A DNA stretch of 24,378 nt from Prasinococcaceae sp. CCMP 1430 (GCA_013416795.1 RQSC01000808.1:77904-102281); one strand, 5' to 3'; shown: positions 1 to 24,378, numbered from the stretch's first letter. Numbers and translations are program-made. Notes: generated from the sequence alone by a model not told the origin.

Positions 1-331
1 GGGGTAGGTCATCAGGAGCCCGCGCGCGCGCCCCGCCCGCCCCCGCCGGGCGAGCGATCCCAGTCCGTCCCCCATCAAACGAGCAGACGCGCGCGCGTGG
101 CGTGGCGCGCGCGGCTTCCGGCGCGCTGCGAGGGCGGGAGCGAGGAGCGCCGCGCGCGCGCGCGCCCCCGCGCCCCGGCGCGTATTAAGGGTCAGAGCCC
201 CATGAAGGGTCTGATGTTCGACTCGTTCACACATCACAATGCACGCGTTCCGACGGGGTGCGGGGTTGAGGTTGGGAGGGGCGCGCCCCGCCGGCGGGTG
301 CGCGCGGCCGCGCGCGCCGAGATAAAATTTG

Positions 332-522
332 GCGCGCGCGCGCGCGCGCGGCCGGCCCCCCCTCGCTCCCGCTCGCTTCCCCCCCCGGCCGGGGCCCGAC
401 CCGACCCAAACCTCGGGACGCGGGGGGCGACGGGAAGGGAGGTCGAAACGCCAATGGATGCGTACCCTAATGAATGCGACCTCAAACGCGACGGCGCGCG
501 CGCGCGCGCGCGCGCGCGCGCG
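332..522. repeat. Two alternating (GC)n tracts upstream of SS4 (332-350, 19 nt; 494-522, 29 nt)
   Basis: Read directly from the sequence. Confidence 0.9.
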
Positions 523-531
523 GTTATTATC

Positions 532-3387
532 ATGCGCCGCCGCGGGGGCGAAGTGGCGGGGCGGGGNNNNNNNNNNNNNNNNNNNNNNNNNNNNNNNNNN
601 NNNGCCGCGGTGGCCAGGGCGGCCGGGGGCACGCCCAGGCGGGGTAACCGCAAGGCGGGAAAGGCCAAGGATGCGGCGGAGGCGCGCACGGGCGCCGCCC
701 TGCAGGCGGCCGCCGAGGCCGCGGACACCGTCGAGGACGCCGTCGAGGAGACGGTCGAGGACGCGCCCGCGCCCGCGGCCGCCAAGGAGGAGAGCGAGGG
801 CGAGGGCGAGGGCGAGGGCAAGGGCAAGGGCAAGGGCAAGGGCAAGGGCAAGGACGAGGACGAACCAGCGCCCAAGGCAGAGGCCAAGTCCGCGCCCAAG
901 GCGGAGGCCAAGCCGGCGCCCGCGCCCTCCGCCGCCGCCAAGCCCGCGCCTCCGAACGCGGCCGCGATCGCGGCCTCGGAGGCCGAGGAGCGGCTCGCGG
1001 AGAAAGTGATGGCCATCGCCGAGGCGAAGCTGGCCGAGGCCGAGAAGGGCATCCAGGCCATCGTGAAGCGGGAGGCCCAGGCGCGCGCCGACGCACAGGC
1101 GGCGCGAGAGGCGCTCGGGGCGGAGGCCGCGTCGCGCGAGAAGCTGCTCTCCGAGCTGAAGCAGCGGCTGGCGGCCGCCGAGGAGGAGACCGAGAAGGCC
1201 AAGGGCGACGCCGCCAAGGCCAACGACGCCGCCGCGAAGGCCAAGGACGCCGCCGCGAAGGCCAAGGACGACGCCGCGAAGGCCGAAGCCGACGAGGCGC
1301 GCAAGGCCGCCGACGCCGAGCTCATCGAGGAACTCGAGAAGCAGCTCGAGGCGGCCACGCGCGTCGCCGAGGACGCGCTCGCCATGAAGACCCTGCTCGA
1401 GGCCGCCGAGCGCCGGGCGGACGACGCGGAGGAGCGGGAGGCTGCCGCGGCGAGGTCCGCGATCTCGGCCGCGGAGGCCGCGCAGGACGCGACCGCCGCC
1501 GCCGAGGAGCTCACCACGGTGGCGATGGAGATCCAGGAGAGCGCGACGGACGACGAGAGCGCCAAAAAGGCGGCGAAGAAGAAGAAGGACAGCGGGTACA
1601 CGGAGGAGCCTTCGGCCCCCTTCGCGTGGGAGGACGGCCAGTGCTACGACGCGCGCATGGGGTTCTGGTCGCAAGCCCTGCTGCGCGTGGACGCGCTCAG
1701 CGCGGCGGGCCTCGTCACGCCCAGCGCGGCGGACGCGCTGCGCCTGCTCGTGTGGCGGCGCAACCGTCGGCTGCGCGAGCTGTACGAGCGCGCCGAGGGC
1801 GAGGCGCCCGGCAACGACGCGCACCTCGCGGGGTTGCTCGCAGAGATGACGAAGCGCGACGGGCGCCCGGGCATGCACGTCGTGCACGTGACCGCGGAGA
1901 TGGCGCCCGTCGCGAAGGTGGGCGGCCTCGGGGACGTGGTGCAAGGCCTCGGCCGCTCCCTGCAGAGCCGCGGCAACTGCGTGGAGATCGTGCTGCCCAA
2001 GTACGACACGCTCGACCACTCGCAGATTGACGGAATGCGGCTGATCGAGGGCCTCGAGCTGAGGGTGCCCTTCGAGAACCACTACGTGCCCGTGCACGTG
2101 TGGACCGGCAGCGTGCACGGCCTGCCCGTGGTGCTGCTCGACCCCTCGAACGGCATCTTCGCCCGCGGCGGCCCGTACGGCCAGCACGACGACGTGGTGC
2201 GGTTCAGCATCTTCAGCGCGGCGGCGCTCGAGTTCCTCGCGGTGACCGGGCGCAAGCCGGACGTCATCCACATCCACGAGTGGACGGCCGCCGCGGCCGC
2301 GCCGCTCTTCCGCGAGCGCTACGCGCGCTGGGGCAGCCTAGGCTCGGCCGCGCTGGTCTTCACCGCGCACTCGTTCGAGCACCAGGGCAAGGACGGCGCG
2401 AACTTGCTCACGCGGCTCGGTCTCTCGCAGGAGGCGCTGCACACCCCGGCGCGCATGGCCGACGTGCGCGATCAAGGCGCGATCAACCTCATGAAGGGCG
2501 CCGTCGCCGCGTGCGACGCGATGACCACCGTCAGCCCGACGTACGCGGCCGAGGGGTGCACGAAGGAGTTCGGCTTCGGGCTCGACGAGATCCTCTCCAA
2601 GCACCGCAACAAGCTCACAGGTGTCCTCAACGGCATCGATTACGCTGCGTGGAACCCGGCCACCGACATGTTCCTGCACACACAATACGCGCGGGCGCAG
2701 GAGGCCGACGGGGACAAGGTGGTCGACGCCTTCGTCGGCAAGGCCGTCAACAAGCGCGCGCTGCAGGAGGAGGTTGGGCTGAATGTCGACCCCCACGTGC
2801 CGCTGGTGGCGTGCGTGGGGCGGCTGGCGGCGCAGAAGGGCGTCAACCTCATTCGCCACGCAGTGTACCGCGCGGCCGAGCAGGGCGCGCAGTTCGTGCT
2901 GCTGGGTCTGCCCGTTGACAACCACATACGAGGCGACTTCGAGAACATCGCGCGGGAGTTCGAGGGTCGCGGCAACGTGGCCATTGTGCTCGCCTACGAT
3001 GAGGGCTTCGCGCACCGCGTGTACGCCGGCTCCGACATTCTGGTGATGCCGTCCATGTACGAGCCGTGCGGCCTCGCGCAGATGATCGCCATGCGCTACG
3101 GCACGGTGCCCGTCGTGCGCAGCACCGGCGGCCTGCGCGACAGCGTGGACGATGTCGACAGCGATGAAGGAGGCAACGGCTTCAGGTTCGATCACGCCAA
3201 CGAGGAGGGCCTCAACTACGGGCTCGATCGCGCCATTCAGTACAAGCGTGACAACGCCGACTGGTGGAGGGACACGCTCGTGGACACGTGCATGAGCACG
3301 GACTGGAGTTGGAACACCTCGGCCGAACACTATGAGGGCGTCTACCAGCGTGGCATGGCCGCGGCGAGCTCGCGCAAGGGCTGGTGA
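532..3387 (+). CDS. SS4: Soluble starch synthase IV (GT5) with long Ala/Glu/Lys-rich coiled-coil N-terminus; true start uncertain (in-frame ATG at 532, or inside the N gap 567-602)
   Basis: Motifs AEMAPVAKVGGLGDVV (KxGGL ADP-glucose site), RLAAQKGVNLI and PSMYEPCGLAQMIAMRYG. The pre-catalytic segment FWSQALLRVDAL...LRLLVWRRNRRLRELY resembles, from memory, the SSIV-specific region of plant SS4. No intron is needed from 603 to the TGA at 3385-3387. The ORF portion 97-531 reads through (GC)n tracts and is probably non-coding. Confidence 0.93.
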   Translation: MRRRGGEVAGRXXXXXXXXXXXXXAAVARAAGGTPRRGNRKAGKAKDAAEARTGAALQAAAEAADTVEDAVEETVEDAPAPAAAKEESEGEGEGEGKGKGKGKGKGKDEDEPAPKAEAKSAPKAEAKPAPAPSAAAKPAPPNAAAIAASEAEERLAEKVMAIAEAKLAEAEKGIQAIVKREAQARADAQAAREALGAEAASREKLLSELKQRLAAAEEETEKAKGDAAKANDAAAKAKDAAAKAKDDAAKAEADEARKAADAELIEELEKQLEAATRVAEDALAMKTLLEAAERRADDAEEREAAAARSAISAAEAAQDATAAAEELTTVAMEIQESATDDESAKKAAKKKKDSGYTEEPSAPFAWEDGQCYDARMGFWSQALLRVDALSAAGLVTPSAADALRLLVWRRNRRLRELYERAEGEAPGNDAHLAGLLAEMTKRDGRPGMHVVHVTAEMAPVAKVGGLGDVVQGLGRSLQSRGNCVEIVLPKYDTLDHSQIDGMRLIEGLELRVPFENHYVPVHVWTGSVHGLPVVLLDPSNGIFARGGPYGQHDDVVRFSIFSAAALEFLAVTGRKPDVIHIHEWTAAAAAPLFRERYARWGSLGSAALVFTAHSFEHQGKDGANLLTRLGLSQEALHTPARMADVRDQGAINLMKGAVAACDAMTTVSPTYAAEGCTKEFGFGLDEILSKHRNKLTGVLNGIDYAAWNPATDMFLHTQYARAQEADGDKVVDAFVGKAVNKRALQEEVGLNVDPHVPLVACVGRLAAQKGVNLIRHAVYRAAEQGAQFVLLGLPVDNHIRGDFENIAREFEGRGNVAIVLAYDEGFAHRVYAGSDILVMPSMYEPCGLAQMIAMRYGTVPVVRSTGGLRDSVDDVDSDEGGNGFRFDHANEEGLNYGLDRAIQYKRDNADWWRDTLVDTCMSTDWSWNTSAEHYEGVYQRGMAAASSRKGW
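567..602. other. Assembly gap (36 N)
   Basis: Run of n. Confidence 1.
796..852 (+). repeat. Coding hexamer repeat (GAGGGC)4(AAGGGC)5 encoding (EG)4(KG)5K
   Basis: Read directly; matches EGEGEGEGKGKGKGKGKGK in the SS4 ORF. Confidence 0.9.
1198..1281 (+). repeat. Four imperfect 21-nt tandem units encoding heptads (AKGDAAK/ANDAAAK/AKDAAAK/AKDDAAK) in the SS4 coiled coil
   Basis: Units start at 1198, 1219, 1240 and 1261. Confidence 0.85.
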
Positions 3388-3829: not shown

Positions 3830-5169
3830 GTGCTGGGGACGGCGGCCGCGGAGACGGCGGAGGTTCTAGGGGGGGGGGGGGGGGGGGAGCGGCGGCCGCG
3901 TCGCGCTGGCACGCACGCGGCGGCGGCCGCCTTTCCCCCGGAGCTACTGAGCGCGGCGGCGGCCGCGCGGTACTGCGCCGCGGGCGGGGCCTGCTGCTTC
4001 CTCTCGCACTCGGCCGCGGTGCCGGTCGACGTCGTCAAGACGCGCTGCCAGCTCGACCCCGCGCGGTACCCGGCGCCGCTGGCGGCCGCTCAGACCATCG
4101 TCGCAGAGGAGGGCGCGGGCGCGCTGCTCGGCGGGCTGGGTGCGACCGGGCTGGGTTATCTAGTGCAGGGGAGCTTGAAGTACGGCATCTTCGAGAGTCT
4201 CAAGGGCGTAGTGGGCGGCACGCTGGATGCAGCATTCGTTGCCGATCACAGGCTGGTGCGTGCGCGCGAGTGCGGGGATTGGCTAGTGCCACTGAGGCAA
4301 GGACATGCGCGCACGCGGCTCGTGCCTGCTCGCAACAGCGCTCGCGCATGCGCACGCACGCGAAAGAGCATAAGCTGACGCGCGCAACGCATTCGTTTGC
4401 TCGCTCAGGTGCTGCTGATTGCGTGCGCGTCCACCGCCGAGCTCTTCGGCACCAGCGCCTTGTGCCCCTTCGAGGCCGCACGCATCCGCATGGTGGCCGA
4501 GCCCGACTTCGCTCCCTCGCTGCTAGCGGCGATGCGGAAGCTTGCTGGCGACGGGCTGGGTCCGCTCTATGGAGGGTTGCCGGTGATTCTGCTCAAAATG
4601 GTACGCAAGCGAGCGCGCGAGCGCATCGACGCGCGAAGGAGCGCAGGGAGAGCGATGCGGAGTGCGTTGGTCACCGCGCGTCGTCACGCGCGCTGACGCC
4701 TGCAGTGCTGCGCCCGATGCTCGTGGCACACGCGCACTCGTCTCGAATGCCTACCCGGAAATGCGCGCAGGTGCCGTACACTGTCACTCAGCTGGTGTCG
4801 TACGAGTTGGCGACGCGGACTCTGTACGATGCCGCAGATGCTGCCGGCAGCGGCGATATGCTGGCTGCATATGTACCCGCCGCAGCAGCGCTCGCGGCGG
4901 CGCTCGCGGCGACGGTGACCTCGCAGCCTGGCGATGCATTGCTCAGCGAGGTCAATCGAATGAATGCATTAGGCGAGACCGAGGGTGACGGTGGCGGCGA
5001 ATTTGTGCCAGAGAGCCTGCCCGCCATCGCGCTGCGATTAGGGCGCTCGGGCGGGCTTGCTACAGGCCTATCATCGCGCCTTGCACAATACTCGCTCATC
5101 GTCGTGACGCAGCTCGTCACCTACGACCTGATCAAAGTCGCCCTCGGCCTTGGCCTTACAGGCAGATAG
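3830..5169 (+). CDS. Mitochondrial carrier family protein, phosphate carrier (PiC/Mir1)-like; exons about 3830..4255, 4409..4600, 4771..5169; 5' end unresolved
   Basis: Three carrier repeats with Px[DE]xx[KR]-type signatures (VPVDVVKTRCQLDP, LCPFEAARIRM, SQPGDALLS). PiC-like segments GYLVQGSLKYGIFE and VPYT. Two phase-0 GT-AG introns join three different ORFs of the track into one frame (338 aa counted from 3830). Confidence 0.85.
4256..4408 (+). other. Spliceosomal intron 1 of the carrier gene (153 bp, phase 0)
   Basis: CTG|GTGCGT...GCTGAC (4374-4379)...CTCAG|GTG; removal restores the frame (ADHRL|VLLIAC). Confidence 0.85.
4601..4770 (+). other. Spliceosomal intron 2 of the carrier gene (170 bp, phase 0)
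   Basis: ATG|GTACGC...GCTGAC (4692-4697)...CGCAG|GTG; removal restores LLKM|VPYT. Confidence 0.85.
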
Positions 5170-5204
5170 CGCCCAAATGAGCGGCGCCAATTGAGTATGA
5201 CTCT

Positions 5205-5209
5205 TGTAA
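5205..5209 (+). terminator. Candidate TGTAA polyadenylation signal of the carrier gene
   Basis: TGTAA 35 nt after the TAG at 5167-5169. Confidence 0.5.
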
Positions 5210-5318
5210 TATCTTTGGGCATGCCGGGGTGCTCGTCGTACGCACGTTGGTGGTGGAATGCCAAGGCACGCGTGGCAGCAATGCGCCGCGGCGCACACAA
5301 CGCGTCGCTGCGACGTCC

Positions 5319-6836
5319 TCAGGGAAGAAGCCGGACTTTCCCCCCGGAATCGCCTCCGTCCTCCCTCCGCAGCTTGTTGGGAAACATGGCAATGAAATCT
5401 ACCAACTTCTTCACGCTTCTTGGTTTGCCTCTGATGCTTTGCCCGATGTCCGACAATTCAGCGGCGCCGCCTCGCTCTCTCAGAAATCCGACGACGATGC
5501 GCAGCACCTCGAGGTGCTCTGCGGTCGGACCGACATTCTCGCCAAGCTGGCCCTGCTGGGCAGTCGCCTGGCTTCCTCCTGCGCTGTCCTCGCGCTTCTT
5601 GCCCGTGTAGGAACCCCATGCCTTCGCCTCGGCGTCCGCAGCGCTGCCCTGCCTGCCGACGGGTGGCGCGCCCCAGCCCTGCGGCTGGGCCGCTTGCACG
5701 TTTCCAACGTTTCGCCCCAGGCCCGGTGGTAGAACACTCTGTGTCGGGGCCACCGGCGCGGCACCTGCACTCGCCCGCGCGCCATCAGTGGCTGCACCAC
5801 CACCACTTTGGGCGGCTGCTTGCCGACCATCCTTGCCCTTCTTGCCCTTCTTGCCCGTGTAGGAACCCCATGCCTTCGCCTCGGCGTCCGCAGCGCTGCC
5901 CTGCCTGCCGACGGGTGGCGCGCCCCAGCCCTGCGGCTGGGCCGCTTGCACGTTTCCAACGTTTCGCCCCAGGCCCGGTGGTAGAACACTCTGTGTCGGG
6001 GCCACCGGCGCGGCACCTCCACCTTCCCCGAGAAGTCCCTCCAGCAGCTGATCAGCGAGGGCGCTTTCGGACTGACCAGCCCCTTGCGAGGGGCCGGGAA
6101 CGGGCGGAGCATTGCTGCTCTGCCGCGCGATTCCCAAGGGCTTCGCTCCCCACCCAGTCGCCTCCTGCTGAGGTGCTGCTTGCTCCGCCTTCCTCACATT
6201 CGGCACCATGCCTGGGGGTAGCTTTGACGCTGTTCTCACCGAGGGTACGATACTCGCGGTCGGCTGGTGCCCCTGCTGTTGCGGCTGCCACTGCCGCTGC
6301 TCGATCTCCTCACGACGTAATTTGTCATCAACTGCCTTCAAGGCGACGTCGACGTCGTCTTGCGCTCCCTCGCGCTTGCGCTTGTCCCTGCGCCCTCGCG
6401 CCCCCTCGCCCTCGCGCCATTCGTCCGATCCCGCGCGCAGCATCTCCGCCGGAACGTCAGCCTCGATCGCGCGGCGCTCCTCTTCATCAAGAGCGCGCTC
6501 CACAGCGGCGCGGTGGCCAGCCTCGGCCGCGAGTATGGCGAAGTCCGGCTGCTGGCGGCTCTTCGAGAGCTCCAGGGCAAGGGCGTCCCCCGTATCGCTC
6601 GCCAAGAGATTGGCGATGTCTTCTTGCACTTTGATGGCTGCCCTGACGGCCGCCGCCACGTCGTCGTAGTATGCAGCGATCCAATGCGAGCCGCGGTCGT
6701 GATCCTCTCCGGCGTTGTACTGGTACGCATAGCGAATGCCGCGGGCGCCCTCGAGCATCGAGGCGATCTCGGCGGCGCACGCACGCGTCGGCACGTGCAA
6801 CACGCGCACCCCAGTCACTCGCCCCCCGTCAGACAT
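5319..6836 (-). CDS. Uncharacterised 505-aa protein: N-terminal RRM-like fold, Gly/Gln/Pro-rich linker with five WG motifs, C-terminal winged-helix (LOTUS/OST-HTH-like)
   Basis: Long open frame with coding-like composition, ATG at 6836 in GCCATG context (MSDGGRVTGVRVLHVP), stop at 5319-5321. Domain calls are by pattern recognition only. Confidence 0.75.
   Translation of the reverse strand: MSDGGRVTGVRVLHVPTRACAAEIASMLEGARGIRYAYQYNAGEDHDRGSHWIAAYYDDVAAAVRAAIKVQEDIANLLASDTGDALALELSKSRQQPDFAILAAEAGHRAAVERALDEEERRAIEADVPAEMLRAGSDEWREGEGARGRRDKRKREGAQDDVDVALKAVDDKLRREEIEQRQWQPQQQGHQPTASIVPSVRTASKLPPGMVPNVRKAEQAAPQQEATGWGAKPLGIARQSSNAPPVPGPSQGAGQSESALADQLLEGLLGEGGGAAPVAPTQSVLPPGLGRNVGNVQAAQPQGWGAPPVGRQGSAADAEAKAWGSYTGKKGKKGKDGRQAAAQSGGGAATDGARASAGAAPVAPTQSVLPPGLGRNVGNVQAAQPQGWGAPPVGRQGSAADAEAKAWGSYTGKKREDSAGGSQATAQQGQLGENVGPTAEHLEVLRIVVGFLRERGGAAELSDIGQSIRGKPRSVKKLVDFIAMFPNKLRREDGGDSGGKVRLLP
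5595..6018. repeat. Exact 172-bp direct repeat (5595-5766 and 5847-6018), offset 252 bp (in frame), inside the minus-strand CDS
   Basis: The two copies are identical base for base by eye and encode AAPVAPTQSVLPPGLGRNVGNVQAAQPQGWGAPPVGRQGSAADAEAKAWGSYTGKK twice. Confidence 0.95.
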
Positions 6837-7494
6837 GGCCGACGCCCCTACCACCGACCTCTCCCAGATCCCCGCCCCCTCCACTGCCTTTCTCGCGCCT
6901 GCTCCTCCCTCGCTCGCCGATGCGCCCTCTGGCCGGCCGGCCGGTCCGCCCGCCCGGCGGCGCCGCGCGCGAGAGCTGCGCAGCGCCTACCCCTGGCCGC
7001 GCCCCTCGCCGTGGGCGGCGGCTCGAGGCTCTTGACTCGCACGCACGAGGGCCCCGGCGTGTCCGAGGCCGTCGTCGGCGGCGGCGGCGGCGCGCCGCGT
7101 CCGCCCACTGGCAAGCTGGCCTGCGCAGGCGCTTTCAATCTCGCACAAAAAAAAACGCTCTGAGTTTCGCTCGTATTTCGCCTGCGCTCACTCGCGCGCG
7201 CGCGCACACGTGCATGCGCTCTCATATGCGCATACGGGCAAAAAAATGGGGCCGAACGTGCGAGACAGCGCGCGGTCGCTGCGCGCCACAGCGCGCGCGT
7301 GCGCGTGCGCTTGGGGGAGTAGGGGGTGGCGGGGGGCGACTGTAAGCATCGACGGCGGGCGAGGGGGGGGCACAGGGCGAGGCGGGGCTGAGCTCACGTG
7401 AGAGAACGGCGGGCGCGCGCGCGGGCGCAGGGGAGGTTTGAGGAGGTGGGAGGCGCGGGCGCGCGTGGGGAGGGGCGGCGCCGGCGTCGGTGCG

Positions 7495-10585: not shown

Positions 10586-12248
10586 ATGGCGGCGGCGGCG
10601 CCCGCCGAGGCGTACGCCGGCCTGAAGACCGAGCTCGAGGAGATCGCCTCGCTGAGCGGGATCGAGGGACTGTTGCACTGGGACCAAGCGAGCATGATGC
10701 CGCCGGGCGCGCAGGAGCTGCGCGGCAAGCAGATGGCGGCGCTCGCCGGCGTGGTGCACGCTCGCAAGACCTCGGTCAAGCTGGGTGAGCTCATCGCTGC
10801 GTGCGGCGGTGCCGAGGCGGACGCGGCCGCGCTGGGGGAGGGCGCCTGCGAGTTCGACGCTGCCAACGTGCGGCGCGCGCACGAGGACTACCGCCGCGCC
10901 TCCCGCGTCCCCGCGGAGATGGCGAAGCGCGAGGCTGAGCTCAGCGCGGCCGGCTACGCTGCCTGGATGAAGGCGCGTGAGGAGAACGACTGGCCAACCT
11001 TCAGCCCCATCCTGAAGGAGGTGCGAGCGCGCGGCGCGCTGGCGCACGCTGGCCGCGTGTGCACTCGCGCTGGCGCACATGCGCTGACCGTCCGGACCTA
11101 TCATCACGACACAGTGGATTGCGCTCGTGCGCGAGCGCTGCGCGCTCGTTTGGCCGGAGCTGCCCGCCTACGACGCCGCCCTGAGCGACTACGAGCGTGG
11201 GCTCACCAAGGAGAGGCTTGACGAGATCTTCCCCCCCATTCGCGATGCCGTGAGCGCGCTGGTCAGCGAGGTGTACGCCGCCGCAGAGGAGAAGGGCGGT
11301 CCGGTGGCGCTTGGCGCACGCGCGTCGGTGCTCGCCGGCGAGTTTGATGCAGACAAGCAGGCGGCGCTCAGCAAGGAGGTGGCATTGGCCATGGGCTTTG
11401 ATGAGAAGTTCGGCAGGCTCGACGTGAGTGCGCATCCGTTCACCGGCGGTGCTGGCCCGCAGGACACGCGCATGACCACGCGCTACAAGAGCGAGGACCT
11501 CTCTGAAGGGCTCACCGGCACCATCCACGAGACCGGCCACGCGCTCTACGAGCAAGGCCGCAACGCAAAGTACACCGGCCAGCCCGTGTCGGCAGCGCAC
11601 AGCATGGGCATTCACGAGAGCCAGTCGCTCCTGTGGGAGCGCATGGTGGCGCTCAGCCCCCAATTCAGTGAGTTCCTCCTCCCCAAGCTGGCCGCATCCT
11701 TCGGCAGCCACTTCGACGGGGTGACGCCCGAGCAACTACACGCCTCCTTCAACCTCGTGAAGCGCCCGAGCCTCATTCGCGTCGAGGCAGACGAGCTGAC
11801 GTATCCCCTGCACGTCATATTGCGCTACGAGCTGGAGTGCGGACTCATGGACGGCTCCATCGAGGTCGACGACTTGCCCAAGCTGTGGAACGAGAAAATG
11901 GAGGCGATGCTCGGTTGTGTCCCCGAGAGCGATTCGAAGGGCGTGCTTCAGGACGTCCATTGGTCCGCAGGGGCCATCGGATACTTCCCCACGTATCTGC
12001 TGGGTGCCGCCTACGCGTGCCAGATCTTCGATTACGCGCGCTCGCAGTTGCCCGGCCTCGAGGAGGAGCTCGTGAAGGGCGAGTTCTCACGCCTCCGCGA
12101 ATGGCTGCGCACCAACGTGCACGAGCTGGGCTCCAAGTTTGACACTGCTGATGAGCTGCTCATCGCTGTGACCGGCGAGCCCCTGAAGCCGGACGCCTTC
12201 ATTGGGTATCTGACCACCAAGTACCGCGCGTTGTACGGCCTGTCTTGA
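10586..12248 (+). CDS. Metallocarboxypeptidase of family M32 (carboxypeptidase Taq/Pfu type), 522 aa; exons 10586..11020 and 11115..12248
   Basis: LHWDQASMMPPG, HPFT, TRMTTRY, the zinc motif HETGH (11526-11540), HESQS, IRVEADELTYPLHVILRYELE, QDVHWSAGAIGYFPTY. A phase-0 intron restores PILKE|WIALVRER. Confidence 0.95.
11021..11114 (+). other. Spliceosomal intron (94 bp, phase 0) in the M32 gene
   Basis: GAG|GTGCGA...GCTGAC (11083-11088)...ACAG|TGG; removal joins ORFs 10586 and 11127. Confidence 0.9.
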
Positions 12249-15412: not shown

Positions 15413-18400
15413 TCAGATGGTGAACGCCGGCGAGGGCGAGTCGACAAATGCGGGCGGTTTGCTGGGCGCATGACCCCAGCTTGTGCGCGCGCCCCGCCCC
15501 GCGAACCCAAACTTCTTGTAGTACGAGTAGCTTTTGGTCTCGGAGCGCTTGAGGTACTTGTAGCCCTGGCCGAGTCCCGGCGTGTCCACCATTGCCACGG
15601 GGGCCACCACGTGCTCAGCGCGAAGCTTCTCGAAGGCCTCGCGGCGAGCAGCATCTTCGGCTGCCAACTGCGCCTCAGCTTCCCCACCGCCCCCCGCCAC
15701 ACCCGCGTTGACAGGCGGTTCGGGGAGCGTGGCAGGGCCCTCAGAGATGGCGCTAGCGTAGTGGCCCAAATCGACGAACTTGATGCCCGCCTTGGAGCCG
15801 GGCTCGAGATAACGCACCTTGGCCTTCTTCACGTGGCCGCTGCGCTCGAGGCCATCCTTCAAACGTCCATATAGCATCACGCGGCCGCTCGAGGAAAGCT
15901 CCACGGCCATGTCGGCGAGGTACTCCACGCGCGCGCCCTCCTCCGAGGTGGCCCATTCGGCGGCGCGCGCGATGTTGGCGTCACGCGCGGCCCGGAGGCG
16001 CTGCTTCTCTTCGAGCGCAGACTCGGCTGCCGCACGACGCGCCATCTCCGCATCGTACTTCGCGGCGTCGGCCGCGGCGCGCTCAGCCACTCGGGCCTCC
16101 TCCTGCTCTGCCAACGTGCGTCGGAGCGCAGCCTCATCCTCTATCCTCTTGAGCTCCTTTGCGCGGGTGGCCTCCTCCTCGGCGGCAACGCGTGCCGCCT
16201 CCGCTTCCTTTGCCTCGCGCAGCTCGCGCTCAGCGGCAGCCTTGCGAGCGAGTTCCGCAGCCTCCTCCGCAGCGCGTTCTGCAGCCTCCTCACGCAGGCG
16301 CGCTTCCTTCGGGCGAAGTCGCACCTCCACGTCTGACAGCGCCACAGTGCCGTTCAAGTCGGCACCGCAGGCACCCTCGATGGCGCACACCACACCACGC
16401 AGCTCGCGTTGGCTCACGCCTGGCAGCACACGCCGCACGAGAGCGCCCGCTGAAGCCAGCGATAGACGCGCGCTGCTGCTCTCAAGTATGGCGGCAGCGC
16501 CACCGCTCATCGAGCCTTCATCGAGTCTCGCGGCGATGCCCGCGCACGGCAGCAGCGTGCCCGCGCGCGACTCGCGCGTCGAGCCTTCACAGAAGAAAGC
16601 TACCTGGAAACGGCCCATAGCGCCGCCGTGTGCGGCCTCGGCAGGTGCGGCTGCCGCACTCTCGACCGCGGCGGCGCCCTGCGACACCCCTTCGGAGAAC
16701 TCCTTCAGCGACACGCTTCTAGCGGCTCCCGTCGCTTGCGCAGCCGAGCCCATCATCGAGACAACGTACGCCGCTTCATCGTCGGTGGCATCATCGACAA
16801 GGAGGAGCACAAGCTTGGCTGCCGCCGTGATGTCGATGCGAGAGCCCTTTGCACCACGTTTGGCGGCGGTCTTGGCACGTTTGGATGCTTCAGCGGAGGC
16901 GGCGAAGGCGTCCGCAAGCGTGGGCTTGGTTGAGCTCGCCATGCGGCGCTGCAGGCGCACGAAGATGCTGGCACGTGTCTTGGGAGTCGCACTGCCCTCA
17001 GCGGATGCTTTCTTCTTCGGTGCCTTTTTCTCGGATGCCTTCTTTTTCGAGGCTGGGCGCACGGGCGCCGAGGCCGGCCCAGTGCTCTTGCTGCCGGCGG
17101 CGGCGGCCTTCTTCGAGCTCACTTTCTTGGCTGCGTCGGCCGATGCTTTCGTGGCCGCACTCTCAAGACTAGATACCTTCTTCTTCTTCTTCTTTGGCGT
17201 CGTGGCCGCCGGAGCGGTCGGCGTCGTGGCGCCTGCCTTGGTGCTAGCCTTGGTGGTACCCTTGGTCGTGGGCTTCGAGCCAGAACTTGCTGGTCGCTTG
17301 GACTTGCCTGCGTCCGGCGCACCAGATGCGGGCTCACTTTTGGCGCGCTCCGCCGCCATCTTCGCCTCGAGCTTTGCCTTCGCGGCCCGAGCCTCCTTTC
17401 TGCGCTTTGCAGCGGCAGCCGCTTCTTCTTTAGCGCGCTCGGTCTGCTTTCTGGGCGAATTAGCAGCCAGCTCTACCAGCGCTGACGCGTCCGCACCGCG
17501 CGCGGTCCTCCCTGAGGCGGGGCCTCTGTCCGCCGTCGTCTTGGTCTTCGCGGTAGTAACCTTAGCCGCGGGCTTGGTGGCGCGCGCCAACGCGCTCTTG
17601 GAGTGAATAAACTCAGAGTGCATGATGACATCGGCGACCGCGGACAGCTCCGATGCGTTCGACAAGTCGCGCATGAGAGGGTCTCTGTGCTTGCGTGGCG
17701 GCGCTTTTCCCAGCACCTTAGGTGGCGGCGGCGGCGACGCGGGCTTGGTCATGACCGGGCGTTCCGGCAGTGGCGCCGCAAGCGGCAGCGCTGGCTGGCC
17801 TTTCTTTGACTTAGACGCTGGCGAGGCAACCGGCACGAGTTTCGGCGTTGGTGCTGCCTCTGGCGGGGTCTTCGGCTCCTTCGGCTCTGGCGTCTTCGCC
17901 TCAGTAGTCTGCGCAATGAGCGTGAGCACGCCTCGCGCGGGCTTGCCATCCGCGGCCTCATGGCCACCGCCACCATGCGGCGTCTCAGCGGCTGGGCGCA
18001 AAACACCCACGCGTCGATCGGCCAGCGCCACCAAGTCTGCACCGCCGGCCCAAGCGCTGCTCGCTGCGAGGCTCTCCACCTCCGCGGCCACGCGGCTCAG
18101 GTCGAGCGTGTACACGTACTTGCCCGCACGCGGGCCCAGCGCAAGGCGCGCGGCGCTGAGGAGCTTGCCGAGACCTCGAAGCGCGCCGCGCACAGACTCG
18201 TCGACGCCGCCAGCGTCGCTCTCGATGGCTGCACCACCGCCGTCGAGACCGCACGCCGCGCGCAAAAGCCTTGCGCCTCCCGCGAGGGCCATTTGCACTC
18301 GCGGCGCGTTGTGATGCTGCAGGTTGCCACTGAGCTCCGCCACGAGGCTTTCGATGTCGCGATCGCCGCTCATGAGCGCCGCCTGCACAGCGGGCGCGAA

Positions 18401-19409
18401 GCCTATTGGCGTTGACGGAAAGCCCGCCATCGCAAGCAGGCGGAGCGTGGCGAGCCCCGTGCGAAGGCGCTGCCCACCCAGCAGCGGGCCGCGGAAGGTC
18501 TCCTCCTCGTACTGCGGCAGGGCGCGCTGCAGGCAGGCGTAGAGCGTGTCGAAGAGCAGCGCGCCGCCACCGCCGCTGTCGGCGCCCTGCGCGAGCGCGC
18601 GCGAGAGCGCCGCGCTCGCATCGACGAGGTCATCCCATGCCAGGAGCGGCGCGGCGCCCTCCTCGCCTGCATCGGCGGGAACGTCGGCCATGGCGCTGGC
18701 GAGCAGGTGGCGCACGAGCGCGCCGCCGCCTGCGCCACGCGCGTGCTCCGCTGGCACGCCTGACGCGCCGGCCAGCGCGAGCGGCGGGGCCTACCGTGGG
18801 CAGCGCGCCGAGCGCCGCGGCGCGGAAGATCGCGCCGCGGCTCGCGCATCCCGCAGCGAGTGAGGCCAGAGCCGCGCGCTGCTCGTCGGCGCCGGCCGTG
18901 CACGAGGCAAGCGCACGCGTGTACCGCCCGTACGCCCCGTCGGACGGCCCCTCTGGCGCGCCCTCCCGCGCCGCGAGCGCGCGCACGAGCGCACCGAACG
19001 CCGCGAGCGCGCGCCGGTAGGCGGCTGGCGGCGCGGTCGCGCTGGGCGAGAGGGCCTCGCCGGTCGACGGCGGTACCGACGCCCCGTGGAGCGCGCGCAC
19101 CTCGGGCACGGCCAGCTCGAGCTCCGCAGCGAATGCAGCGCCGCCGTCGCTTCCGTCGCCGAGCGCCACGCGCAATCGCTCTACGGTGTCGCATAGCGAC
19201 GACTCCTTCGCACTCGCGACGGCGGCGGTCCCAGCGTCGGGGAGCGCCGCGGGGCGCGGTGGGGGCACGGCGGCAGCGCTACCAGTGACGTTCGGGAGCG
19301 CGGCGAGGCGCGTTGGCAGCGGAAGCGGCGCGCGCAGCGACGCAAGGGGAGCCGCCGCGGTCGTCGGCGGTGCGGCGCGTGGCGACGCGAGGGGCGCGGC
19401 CGCGGTTGG
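15413..19409 (-). CDS. Large uncharacterised protein (>1300 aa if joined), 5' end lost in the N gap, apparent 1-nt frameshift near 18786-18789; helical N-terminus, Lys/Ala/Pro low-complexity middle, possible degenerate EF-hands, coiled coil
   Basis: The 1114-codon ORF 15413..18757 has coding-like composition, and a second coding-like frame runs from the gap edge (19409) to about 18790. Confidence 0.65.
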
Positions 19410-19800: not shown

Positions 19801-20352
19801 CCTTTGAATTTTTGCGCCCCCGCCCGGATCGCGGGCGGGAGCCCAGTCCCCCAAACGCAAACACACAGCCGAAAGAATGACAACGTTCACATTCACGTAG
19901 GTGCGGGGGCGCGCGGTCGGCGCGCGGCCGTCCGCGAAACGCGCGGCGTTCGCGGTGCGTTTTCGGCACGCCCTCTTTCTCGCGGTTCCCGTTTTCGCGG
20001 GGCGCGTCTTCCGCGGGGTCGGCGCCGCGGGCGCGCCCGCAACGCATCGAAAGCTCGAAGCTCGAAGCTGGCACCGCGAGGTTGAGGTTCTGTTTTAGGG
20101 TTGAGACGCCGCATCGGACAGGGTTTCCAACGCCGCGCTGCGCGCGCGCGGGCCCGGATCGAATCGAATCGCGCGCGCGCGACCGCGGACGGGGTTTCGT
20201 CGTCGGATTTAGGGTTAGAGGAAGTAGGGTCTCTGAATGGGGATTCGCGTGTCAAATCGCATGCGTTTTTCGGGGTCGGCGGCGCGCGAGAGGGAAGTGC
20301 GCGCGCGCCCGCACGCGTGGCGCGCGCGTGGCGGGCGGGGGTCCCCCCGCNC

Positions 20353-22023
20353 CCTTCCCTCGCGAGCTCCGCGACTGCATGCGGTATCGAGGCCGCCCAG
20401 CTGCGTGCGCCCCACCCCCCCCTCCAGCGGCCCGCGAGCGCGCTGCGGGGGATCGAGGCGGTCGCCGCCGCGTCCGCGCTGCGCGGCTTCGCGCTCGGCT
20501 ACGGAGGGTATGCGACGCTGACGGTCCTGGGCGTGGCGCTGCGCGAGCGGCTGTGGAGGCGCGCCGCCGCCGTCGTCTTCGAGAGCGGGCGCGCCAGGGA
20601 GGGCGCGCGCTACGGCGCCTTCCTCGCTGCGGCGCTGGCGAGCTACAACGGCGTGATGCACGCCACGCGCGGCGTCGATCCGCGCACCGCGCTCGGGCGA
20701 TATCGCGGCGCGCTGGCCGGCCTCGTCGGCGGCGCCTCGCTGGGCATCGCACCCACGGCCTTCTCGCGCCCCGCGACGCTGCTGCTGAGCGTGCGCGCGC
20801 TCGAGGTGGGCGCGCGTAACCTCGTGCGGCGCGGCGTCGTGCCCAGGCTGCCGCACGCCGACGCCGCTCTCATGGCGGCGGCGAGCGCGCGCGTCATGTG
20901 GTGCTGGATCTTCTGCCCGCGGGCGCTTGACCCGGGCTACCTGCGCTTCATCATGCGCATCGGAGGAGTGACGCGCGAGCAGCTCGACGCGCTCGCGACC
21001 GTGCTCAGGGGGGAGAGGCTGGGCGCGGAGCTTCTGGAGCGCCTCAACGCCGCGCTGCCCGCAGGGCAGCCGCCAGTGCGCGCCGACGCCTGGCGCCACC
21101 GCGGCGCCGAGGCACGTGTACTTCACAACGCCCCCTCGGTGTCGAGCGCCGCCTTCCTGGCCAGATACTGGCTGGGCGCGCTCGGCCGCAGCATGCGCAT
21201 GTACCTGCCCGTGTACGCCGCGCCGGCCGTGCTGCTGCGCGCCCCCGAGGCGCTGCGCGACCCAGCGGGCTGGGCGGCAAGGACCGCGCCGGAGGTGGTG
21301 ACCGGCGCGGCGCGCTCGGCGCTCTTCCTGGGCTCGTTCTGCGCGACGGGATGGGCGGCGGTGCTTGGCTTTGCGGCGGCGGGCGCCAACGCGCGCGCGC
21401 TCGGGGGCAAGGGTGGCGAGGCCTTCCACGGCTCTGTGAGCGGCGCCGCGTGCGGCCTCGCTGTGGTGCTGGAGAAGCGCTCGCGCCGCGTCGAGCTCGC
21501 GCTCTTCGTGCTCAGCCACGCGCTGCGCTCCTGCTGGCGCGGCGCGCCTCTGCGGCGCCGGGAAAAGGACAGGGTGGAGGCGTTCGTGACCGTGCCGCTC
21601 GGTATGCTCGCGGTGGCGTGCATGTGCCACGCCTACGTGCGCCACCCGGATGACGTGCGCCGGTCCTACGCCAAGATCATGCGGCGGCTCATGGACAACG
21701 GTACGGGGGGCCAGCAGAAGCGCAAGCTGCTGTGGCCGCTGGTGTCGGCCAAGCCCGAGAAGGGTGTCAAGGACGGCAAGGATGTCAAGGATGTCAAGCT
21801 CGCGCCGGTGCCACAAACGGACCGGCTGCTGCGCCTCATCCCGCGCGACGGCTCAAACGCGTCCTTCGGCGACTGGAACGAGGAGCATGCGGGGGCGGCG
21901 CGTCCCGCTTCGCCCCGTACGACGTCGCGCCTCGCGGAGGAGGGGCCGCCCCCACCTCGCGCGGGCGCGGGCGTGATTGACGGCGGCCTGGCGTCGGCCG
22001 ACGGGGAGGCGCCCGCAGAGTGA
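20353..22023 (+). CDS. TMEM135: TMEM135 (PMP52)-family membrane protein; start codon not visible, probably at or near the single N at 20351
   Basis: ALAGLVGGASL, LLLSVRALE, HADAALMAAASARVMWCW, YLPVY, ARSALFL and VLEKRSRRVELALFVLSHAL match the two-half TMEM135 pattern. There is no in-frame ATG before the conserved region. Confidence 0.8.
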   Translation, partial: PSLASSATACGIEAAQLRAPHPPLQRPASALRGIEAVAAASALRGFALGYGGYATLTVLGVALRERLWRRAAAVVFESGRAREGARYGAFLAAALASYNGVMHATRGVDPRTALGRYRGALAGLVGGASLGIAPTAFSRPATLLLSVRALEVGARNLVRRGVVPRLPHADAALMAAASARVMWCWIFCPRALDPGYLRFIMRIGGVTREQLDALATVLRGERLGAELLERLNAALPAGQPPVRADAWRHRGAEARVLHNAPSVSSAAFLARYWLGALGRSMRMYLPVYAAPAVLLRAPEALRDPAGWAARTAPEVVTGAARSALFLGSFCATGWAAVLGFAAAGANARALGGKGGEAFHGSVSGAACGLAVVLEKRSRRVELALFVLSHALRSCWRGAPLRRREKDRVEAFVTVPLGMLAVACMCHAYVRHPDDVRRSYAKIMRRLMDNGTGGQQKRKLLWPLVSAKPEKGVKDGKDVKDVKLAPVPQTDRLLRLIPRDGSNASFGDWNEEHAGAARPASPRTTSRLAEEGPPPPRAGAGVIDGGLASADGEAPAE

Positions 22024-22453: not shown

Positions 22454-22670
22454 TTACTCTGCGCCGCGCGACACTCCGCGGGCCTGTACTACCTCGCCTT
22501 CCTCGAGCGCATCGCTATTTCCACCAGAAGCGTGGCAACTGTTGCCGCCACTGCGGACGCCGCCATTGCCTCTGCCACCGCCATCGCCTCCATCGCAGAC
22601 GCCGGTAGCAACGGCAATAGCAGCACCACAACCAGCGTTTAACATGTCGTCGGCCTCTTCGCTGCTGCTG

Positions 22671-22722
<52 letters not shown>

Positions 22723-23905
22723 ACTCCACGCCTACGAGCTCGCCCTCTTCGGTGGCGTTTTCGCCCACCACAAGGTAGTCGCCCGCTTTCACCTCTTCGG
22801 GCAGCGCCACCGCGAGCGTGGGGAATTCGACGAGCGTGCGTCCGACGAGCGCCTCGCGCAGTGGCGCTCGGGGATCGAGGGCGTAGTAAACCTGGCGGTC
22901 TGCTCGGCAGAGCTCCTTGCGGAGGAGCAGCCGCAGCGGGGTATCGTGCTCGTGCACACACCCGTCGCCGCCGCCTGCGCGTGCGCCGTCCCCGCCATGG
23001 CCCTCGGCGGCTGCGCCGCCCGCGTTTTCCCCCGCGGTTTCCCCTGCGCGCGCCTCGTGCGCCTCCACGTACTCGCGCAGCCTGTGCCTGACCGCCGCGC
23101 CGCAGCCCCCAAGCGCGGCCCCGAGGGCTGCGCCAACAGCCGCGCGCTCGTCAACGCTCTCGAGCACCACCGTCTCACCCGCACTGGCACCTTGACGGCA
23201 GCCAGCAGCCTCGCTGCCCGCCGCCCCATTCGTGCGCGCGAAACGCAGCTCCACGCGCCAATGCAGCGTGCGCGAGCCCTTGGCCCCCTTCCCGCCCCCC
23301 TTGCCTCCGAGCCGCGTCGTGTTGGCCTCACGCCGCCCCATCCCTGGCGGCATGAAGCGCAGCGAGACACCGCGCTCGCGTGCGGCAGCGCGCAGTACGT
23401 GCAGCGCACGCGGCAGCGCCGCGTCCGGACGCTCTTGCGGAGGGCGCAGCTCGTCGGCGTCCTCGGCGTCATCAGCGTCCGCAGCAGAGCCCCTCCCACC
23501 GCGTCCAGACCTCCCCCTCCCGCGCCCGCCGCCGCGCCCGCCGCGCCCGCCGCGCCCGCCACCAGCGAACGCGCTTCGTGGACGCGCGCGCTTGGCGGCG
23601 TCGCCCTCGCGCGCCGCCTCCTCGAGGAGCGTGTAGTCCGACGCGAGGTGCGCGTCGGTGAACTCCGCGAGCGGCACGAAGGCCGTGCGGTCGCGCTTGC
23701 CCGTGCACCCGTGCACGGCCTTGTGCGCGCGCACGCACCCGAGCGAGCACGTGCGCCGCGCGCAGCCCGGGCACGTGTACTTGGCGGGCGCCCCGCACTG
23801 CGCGCACGCGACGCCCGCGCTGCCGCACTGCGCGTCGCCGCGTCCACCCCACGGGCGCGAGCGCGGGCGCGCGAGCGCGCTCGCGAGCGCGCCGTGTGAC
23901 ACCAT
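22454..23905 (-). CDS. BCD1: Box C/D snoRNP assembly factor BCD1 / ZNHIT6 (zf-HIT protein), about 483 aa
   Basis: zf-HIT CAQCGAPAKYTCPGCARRTCSLGCVRAHKAVHGC followed by TGKRDRTAFVPLAEF...LASDYTLLEE; further motifs MPPGMGRREANTT, HWRVELRF and LVGRTLVEFPTLAV; first ATG at 23905. Confidence 0.92.
22671..22718 (-). repeat. (CTGTCG)8 coding hexamer repeat encoding an acidic (SD)n tract in BCD1
   Basis: Read directly; matches SDSDSDSD in the ORF translation. Confidence 0.9.
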
Positions 23906-24378
23906 CACGCGTTCTCTTACCTCACCCCACCCCCATCCCCGTTCAACGCACCCACGCGCGTGTGCACACGCACCCACACCCACGCCCACACCCACGCTCG
24001 CCCCCCGTCCCCCTCCCCCTCCCCCCCCCCCTTACACCATCCCAGCCGCCGCAGCGCGCTCCTCGCTGGCGCTGCTTCGGCACACAACCCAATCCATCTT
24101 TTGGGTCTGACAATTGTAGGGTTCTGATACATTCGAACGCTCATTGCATGTGATTCGGACGTGAGGTGACTCGACGCGTGCGATTTGATACGCTCATTTC
24201 TTTTCAGCCCGGGGATGGAACGGGAGCAGGTGCGGGCGCCCGCACAACAGTCAGTTGCGCCCGCACAGTCGCGTCTCAGCGGCGCGCGAAATGCGCAGAG
24301 GCGGGCGAATCCGCGCGCGTTCGCTGCCGCCTCTGCGCGAGCAGAGGCAGCGGCGGCGGCGCGCGGGCGCCGCGTGGG

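Follow-up and report, generated by a model that had tools for sequence, protein, structure and literature searches.

What is the function of a protein that combines tryptophan–glycine motifs, as they are known from Argonaute-binding scaffolds, with the absence of any recognizable relative outside a single genus of algae? This question is raised by a gene on the minus strand at positions 5319–6836 of a stretch of DNA of 24,378 nucleotides from Prasinococcaceae sp. CCMP 1430 (GCA_013416795.1 RQSC01000808.1:77904-102281), which was analyzed over its whole length and is referred to as the window in the following. A first-pass annotation of this DNA had proposed that the gene codes for an Argonaute-hook scaffold with an RRM-like domain, WG/GW repeats and a LOTUS-like domain. 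We could show that the gene is real and expressed and that its product is an orphan protein which is restricted to the marine green picoalga Prasinoderma. With respect to its function we suggest that the orphan is a nucleic-acid-associated adaptor which presents repeated docking motifs of the PPG-hydrophobic and the GWG type, a proposal for which the evidence stands about in the balance. The protein would be composed of four parts, namely an N-terminal ferredoxin-like domain (which may be an RRM in decay), a charged and helical segment bearing a patch that resembles a nuclear localization signal (NLS), a linker rich in Ala, Gly, Gln and Pro, and a minimal winged helix at the C-terminus.

The gene is contained in a minus-strand open reading frame (ORF) of 521 codons at 5319–6884, in which the first ATG, at 6836, opens a coding sequence (CDS) of 505 amino acids. 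The start codon is located at 6834–6836 and the stop codon at 5319–5321, so that the ORF list confirms the placement given in the first-pass annotation, and the sequences quoted there for both termini were found as well. Transcription of the gene is seen in public sequencing runs: X1 is, by its label, probably RNA from the same organism, X11 is a DNA run, and X3 is an ocean metatranscriptome. Contigs of X1 extend over 5056–5624 and 5989–6852; they are colinear with the genome, free of joints, and end there, whereas the DNA run X11 runs on into both flanks of the gene. These contig ends point to an intronless transcript reaching from about 6852 to 5056 with a leader of 16 nucleotides, the strand being taken from the ORF, and thus support the ATG at 6836. 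The sole gaps between the transcript contigs fall at the internal repeat described below, at which the unitigs break. Contigs of X3 are found at 6587–6834 and 5091–5298, so that transcripts are known both from culture and from ocean metatranscriptomes. In addition, the same gene with an identical call of 505 amino acids is located on a Tara metagenome contig, and independent metagenome contigs carry the same ORF call. The GC content at the three codon positions of the CDS is 0.74/0.54/0.72, and the dip at the second position is as expected for coding DNA. Together with the in-frame insertions and deletions (indels) of the population variants (see below), these observations define an intronless CDS. 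The pentamer TGTAA, the usual polyadenylation signal of green algae, occurs once, at 5160 on the minus strand and 161 nucleotides past the stop codon; the X1 contig runs about 100 nucleotides beyond it, to 5056.

On the level of the amino acid sequence the protein stands alone. Pfam searches at E = 10 with the whole protein and with three separate pieces, including residues 1–96 and the C-terminal 73 amino acids, returned nothing relevant (matches to DUF3378 and Macoilin were rejected as noise), and a sequence search of the PDB at E = 10 gave no match. A word-index protein search retrieved only near-identical metagenome variants, all of at least 94% identity. Likewise, the exhaustive phmmer search against 1.84 billion representatives led back to the protein's own cluster only, which comprises 11 ENA/Logan members; an exact look-up did not find the precise protein of the window in this collection.

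The part of the protein which carries the docking motifs is a linker of about 250 residues. Judging from its composition it is probably disordered, as residues 185–437 contain 18% Ala, 17% Gly, 11% Gln, and 10% Pro and very few hydrophobic residues. The five WG motifs which had been reported in this region were found exactly at their coordinates, with W229 at 6147–6155, W304 at 5922–5930, W388 at 5670–5678, W323 at 5865–5870, and W407 at 5613–5618. All five are present, yet they are not independent of each other. A direct-repeat search revealed a tandem duplicate with a spacing of 252 bp, not picked up by Tandem Repeats Finder, which spans both QGWGA and both AWGS motifs. The first young copy (residues 274–357, 5766–6017, minus strand) contains LPPGL at 5970–5981, the GWG of QGWGA with W304 and the WG of AWGS with W323, and then a spacer rich in Lys and Gly. 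The second young copy (residues 358–441, 5514–5765, minus strand) contains LPPGL at 5718–5729, the GWG of QGWGA with W388 and the WG of AWGS with W407, and then passes through a linker into the winged helix. Both copies agree completely (100% identity) over their first 171 nucleotides and then run into unrelated tails of 81 nucleotides, and this identity reduces the number of independent tryptophan motifs to three. In the DNA run X11 the repeat unitig at 5595–5766 is covered about twice as deeply as the spacer unitig, and the two copies are therefore real in that strain. The enrichment of WG was evaluated by composition-matched shuffles after removal of the second copy. In residues 185–357 all three tryptophans have Gly as the next residue (shuffle P = 0.004), and in residues 130–357 this holds for three of the five (shuffle P = 0.024), so that the enrichment after de-duplication is modest.

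A new result is the presence of an older third copy of the repeat, which has kept both LPPG[M/L] and GWGAxPxG. This diverged copy comprises residues 197–243 (6108–6248, minus strand) with LPPGM (PPGM at 6207–6218) and TGWGAKPLG, whose GWG is the one of W229. Its local alignment with the young module has a score of 86 (z = 7.4, 1000 shuffles). The positions kept between old and young copies are LPPG[M/L], NV, PQ, GWGA, P, G, and RQ, the rest having diverged. According to this alignment the repeating unit is LPPG-hydrophobic followed by GWGAxPxG, of which the linker contains three copies. The distance from LPPG[M/L] to GWGAxPxG is 14–18 residues, and AWGS is an extra motif of the two young copies only.

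Both motifs of this unit have counterparts in known systems. PPG followed by a hydrophobic residue is the consensus of GYF-domain ligands, and PPGL in TNRC6/GW182 binds to GIGYF1/2 (PMC10187677). GYF proteins occur in plants as well, for example, EXA1 and PSIG1. The three LPPG[M/L] motifs of the orphan fit the PPG-hydrophobic consensus of ligands such as TNRC6, TTP, ZNF598, and SmB; unlike in these established ligands, the motif of the orphan could be a product of chance in a linker rich in Pro and Gly. The resemblance to GW182/TNRC6 comprises GW/WG tryptophans in a Gly/Gln-rich and presumably disordered region, a PPGL-type motif, an RRM-like domain, and a basic NLS-like patch. On the other hand, there is no sequence homology between both proteins, the RRM-like domain is N-terminal in the orphan, which reverses the order of the parts, UBA and PAM2 are lacking, and a winged helix has been added. 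Furthermore, GW182 proteins have dozens of tryptophan motifs as compared to three to five in the orphan.

In the adaptor that we envisage, the winged helix and possibly also the N-terminal domain would anchor the protein to nucleic acid, RNA being the most probable one. A GYF-domain protein would be recruited through the PPG-hydrophobic motifs, and some partner with tryptophan-binding pockets would take up the exposed tryptophans. We infer nucleic-acid binding, the disorder of the linker, the NLS and every partner from the features described here.

The C-terminal domain (residues 438–505, 5322–5525, minus strand) is modelled as a winged helix. The last 85 residues were modelled with single-sequence AlphaFold2 (AF2), and the last 68 of them adopt the order alpha-beta-alpha-alpha-beta-beta (H19–34, E38–40, H41–47, H58–63, E69–73, and E79–83 in the numbering of the 85-residue model), which corresponds to the alpha1-beta1-alpha2-alpha3-beta2-beta3 of a winged helix-turn-helix. 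When this model was compared with 48,161 representative chains by VIA-align, the highest Z values were obtained for 2od5 (8.5), Egalitarian (8.5), the LOTUS domain of MARF1 (8.3), and the Z-alpha domain of ZBP1 (8.2), followed by the WHB domain of cullin/APC2 (7.9), the LOTUS domain of Tejas (7.7), and TDRD5 (7.6), all of which are below 9, in a range that is common among unrelated small domains. A second-look run gave 8.6–8.9 for the Egalitarian ED, 8.5 for 2od5 and MARF1, and 8.2 for Z-alpha and ZAP. The LOTUS-type and Egalitarian domains are thus among the top neighbours (Z 7.6–8.9 across 65–73 aligned residues), and Z-alpha, ZAP, and cullin WHB score within one Z unit of the LOTUS-type domains. 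As all these values lie within about one unit and in the common range, the ranking speaks for RNA-binding winged helices of the LOTUS type and does not establish them. Foldseek against the PDB returned only generic winged helices with E values of at least 0.013, the LOTUS domain of TDRD7 appearing at rank 13 with E = 0.064, and a shape search of the atlas yielded generic winged helices, for example, DUF7343 and MarR. The fold matches include many DNA-binding repressors as well as the winged helices of cullin, ORC, and MCM. The neighbours in the language model are winged-helix families throughout, including OST-HTH, at similarities of 0.76–0.82. The OST-HTH profile PF12872 did not match the whole protein or the isolated C-terminal 73 amino acids at E = 10.

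Of the LOTUS-like domain that had been proposed, the winged-helix fold is upheld by AF2 and VIA-align, whereas the assignment to the LOTUS family is not established, as there is no profile match and the neighbours are tied. We conclude that the C-terminus is predicted to be a winged helix, with moderate structural support for a minimal LOTUS-like, Egalitarian-like, or Z-alpha-like domain. In OST-HTH domains a helical insert between helices 2 and 3 bears the motif Ghxph, and a two-turn helix at this place is described as unique to OST-HTH (PMC2848206). Egalitarian domains closely resemble LOTUS domains according to their authors (PMC13186709). With the LOTUS/OST-HTH domains (MARF1, TDRD5/7, Tejas, and plant and bacterial NYN-LOTUS proteins) and with the Egalitarian ED the orphan shares the topology and a long connection between alpha2 and alpha3, and directly before the recognition helix, at the place of Ghxph, it has the sequence SVKKL, which fits hxph with Ser replacing Gly. 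Unlike OST-HTH, the orphan lacks a sequence match, its insert is modelled as a coil of 10 residues, the Gly of the motif is a Ser, and a C-terminal helix is missing. The extended LOTUS domain, which binds Vasa, is defined by an extra C-terminal helix and is reported in animals only (PMC7498356). Should the domain of the orphan be a LOTUS domain, it would be of the minimal kind, for which the same paper gives the binding of G-rich or G-quadruplex RNA as the conserved activity. The polypeptide of the orphan stops two residues past beta3, which leaves the extended-LOTUS helix absent. Thus, the recruitment of a Vasa-type helicase, to which the first-pass annotation had alluded, does not apply to this protein.

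The N-terminal domain (residues 9–92, 6561–6812, minus strand) is less well defined. Single-sequence AF2 modelling of residues 1–120 gave the elements E9–15, H18–30, E34–41, E51–57, and H60–79, followed by helices, with a poor mean predicted local distance difference test (pLDDT) of 63.6. The beta-alpha-beta-beta-alpha spacing that had been read from the sequence is therefore recovered in the model at this confidence, whereas the call of an RRM is weak, as a profile match is missing and the RNP residues deviate. At E = 10 the RRM profiles (PF00076 clan) matched neither the whole protein nor residues 1–96, so that Pfam supports neither the RRM nor the LOTUS domain. Two fold searches placed archaeal RNA polymerase subunit L (Z 7.1), ABM monooxygenases, Pcc1/Gon7, CutA, and ACT at the top and RRMs at ranks 48–50, and Foldseek against the PDB found no match for the domain at E ≤ 0.001. 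The language model, on the other hand, has the RRM_1, RRM_2, and RRM_11 clusters as neighbours at 0.86–0.89, with few shared features and below the value of 0.9 from which such a similarity counts as more than a lead. The consensus motifs RNP1 and RNP2 of RRMs carry aromatic residues on beta3 and beta1, respectively. By eye, beta1 of the orphan (VRVLHV) has an Arg at the aromatic position of RNP2, and beta3 (RGSHWIAA) fits about four of the eight positions of RNP1. The order of the secondary structure elements thus resembles an RRM, as does beta3, which is rich in aromatic residues and preceded by an RG dipeptide, but the model has a helix at the position of beta4, and other ferredoxin-like folds outrank the RRMs. 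The domain is probably a generic ferredoxin-like fold, for which an RRM-like, possibly degenerate, character is possible and not demonstrated. It is followed by a charged segment (residues 98–182, 6291–6545, minus strand), which is evident from the sequence and is predicted to be helical, with helices at residues 98–119 in the AF2 model. Within this segment a basic KRKR patch (residues 147–156, 6369–6398, minus strand) looks, by eye, like an NLS.

The 11 population variants, each at least 98% identical, allow a view on the recent evolution of the gene. Four indels of 84, 8, 7, and 1 amino acids were found, every one of them in frame. The largest reflects the copy number of the 84-amino-acid module (module region 5514–6017; variants P0002–P0013), which is two in four variants and one in the other seven, where the first young copy is the one that is lacking; the single-copy variants could be due to a true copy-number polymorphism or to the collapse of the exact 171-nucleotide repeat in short-read assemblies. 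A duplication of the eight amino acids SQGAGQSD is present in 7 of the 11 variants and not in the copy of the window. The insertion of seven amino acids occurs in variant P0003 and that of one amino acid in P0013, both in frame. With regard to selection, the two end domains have fewer non-synonymous than synonymous changes per site, with a ratio of non-synonymous to synonymous polymorphism (pN/pS) of 0.16–0.32 in the N-domain on the basis of very few changes, and the linker has a ratio of about 1.4 from 5 differences. In general, the variants differ by 5–17 changes per pair, which is too few for the ratio of non-synonymous to synonymous substitution rates (dN/dS) to be decisive.

Several points weigh against the adaptor that we suggest. 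As there is no relative on the sequence level, every domain call depends on single-sequence AF2 models, and of the five models of the C-terminal domain one is confident (mean pLDDT of 80.1 in the best model and 49–63 in the other four). The poor model of the N-domain and the common range of the VIA-align scores belong here as well, and the ligand of many winged helices is DNA or protein and not RNA. The apparent conservation of the docking motifs stems from one old duplication within the gene and not from orthologues, and in a linker so rich in Pro and Gly chance can produce PPGx as well as WG. The GC content at third codon positions (GC3) is 0.72 in the orphan gene as compared to 0.93 in the neighbouring gene for starch synthase and 0.85 in that for the M32 peptidase, and the overall pN/pS in pairwise comparison with the window copy is about 0.6–0.7 at 13–17 differences per pair. 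The low GC3 together with the population dN/dS of 0.6–0.7 suggests weak constraint. The main rival explanation is a young and fast-evolving lineage-specific gene, in which the linker motifs would be by-products of the expansion of low-complexity repeats and have no role in docking, and the winged helix would be a generic binder of DNA or protein with no relation to RNA biology. We regard this as possible, though on the whole doubtful. It would agree with the orphan status among 1.84 billion representatives, with the exact 171-nucleotide duplicate and the frequent in-frame indels of the linker, with the pN/pS of the linker (5 differences) and a GC3 that is low for this genome, and with the fold matches to DNA-binding repressors and to cullin, ORC, and MCM winged helices. 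It is less easily reconciled with the old copy, which kept LPPG and GWGA amid diverged flanks, with the low ratio in the N-domain (again from very few changes), and with transcription both in culture and in the ocean. An even more sceptical explanation, a chance ORF in non-coding DNA of 70% GC, is very improbable. Long ORFs are indeed found in all six frames of the region and no homologue is known outside the species; nevertheless, the transcript contigs fit the borders of the CDS, all four indels are multiples of three, the GC content dips at the second codon position, a confident winged-helix model was obtained from a single sequence, and the same ORF was called on independent metagenome contigs.

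The original proposal, a GW182-like scaffold for small RNAs or RNA granules consisting of an RRM, a putative Argonaute-binding linker, and a LOTUS domain, goes further than our adaptor, and we consider it to be unlikely. It has in its favour that three independent tryptophan motifs lie in small-residue contexts, with W304 and W323 being 19 residues apart, that PPGL is present in the linker as in TNRC6, and that the closest structural matches include LOTUS-type domains. The low number of tryptophans is compatible with an Argonaute hook, since three WG/GW motifs reportedly suffice for the binding of AGO1 by a viral suppressor protein (PMC2904775). Nevertheless, there are only three independent motifs with a modest enrichment, phmmer found no orthologue showing conservation of the tryptophans among the 1.84 billion representatives, RRM and LOTUS fail in every profile search, and the Vasa-binding helix of extended LOTUS domains is absent. 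Moreover, Dicer is listed among the families gained after the Prasinodermophyta had split off (PMC7455551), and the small-RNA pathway of this alga may therefore be incomplete or atypical; a survey of small-RNA genes across the Viridiplantae (PMC7994812) offers no usable statement on Prasinoderma. More improbable still, in our opinion, is an independently evolved GW182-like adaptor in the full sense, in which the modules LPPG[L/M]...GWGA would couple a non-slicing Argonaute, bound by the tryptophans, to a GYF-domain translational repressor, bound by the PPG-hydrophobic motifs, with the LOTUS-type winged helix and the decayed RRM adding contacts to RNA. If this coupling were true, a slicing-independent route of silencing would exist outside animals, in the deepest-branching green lineage.

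As it stands, the locus is mainly a well-characterized orphan gene. If the motifs are functional, the protein would be a compact and experimentally tractable adaptor that arose de novo in a single algal lineage by the combination of a winged helix with duplicated docking motifs, and it could be informative on the mode of action of a non-slicing Argonaute in an alga reportedly devoid of Dicer. The analysis also calls for caution in two respects: a very recent internal duplication inflates the count of motifs, and RRM and LOTUS domains called by eye need the support of profiles or structures.

The window has a GC content of about 70%, in agreement with the 69.8% of the published Prasinoderma coloniale genome (PMC7455551), and carries typical green-algal nuclear genes, of which those for a starch synthase, an M32 peptidase, a histidine phosphatase, and a BCD1/zf-HIT protein are recognized by Pfam. 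The convergent neighbour at 4397–5169 on the plus strand is mitochondrial carrier-like; its ORF at 4397–4696 matches Mito_carr with E = 1.6e-4, just under the gathering score. The coding parts of this gene lie in different frames, so that introns are probable, and its 3′ end is at most about 150 bp away from the stop codon of the orphan gene. Two ORFs, at 15413–18757 on the minus strand (1114 amino acids) and at 20101–22023 on the plus strand (640 amino acids), have no Pfam family at E ≤ 0.001; they could represent additional lineage-specific genes or ORFs that arose by chance in GC-rich DNA. Between 19001 and 20000 the GC content falls to 0.54 as compared to 65–76% elsewhere, and the two ORFs across this region are without Pfam match. 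The starch synthase gene at 97–3387 on the plus strand is identified by Glyco_transf_5 (E = 1e-57) and Glycos_transf_1 and has an N-terminal extension of about 590 amino acids without Pfam match. The ORF of the M32 carboxypeptidase at 11127–12248 on the plus strand covers only the profile positions 142–489 (E = 2e-124), and this partial match places the N-terminal part in another exon or frame upstream. At 22454–23995 on the minus strand, finally, a BCD1 domain is combined with a HIT zinc finger in a homologue of a box C/D small nucleolar ribonucleoprotein (snoRNP) assembly factor.

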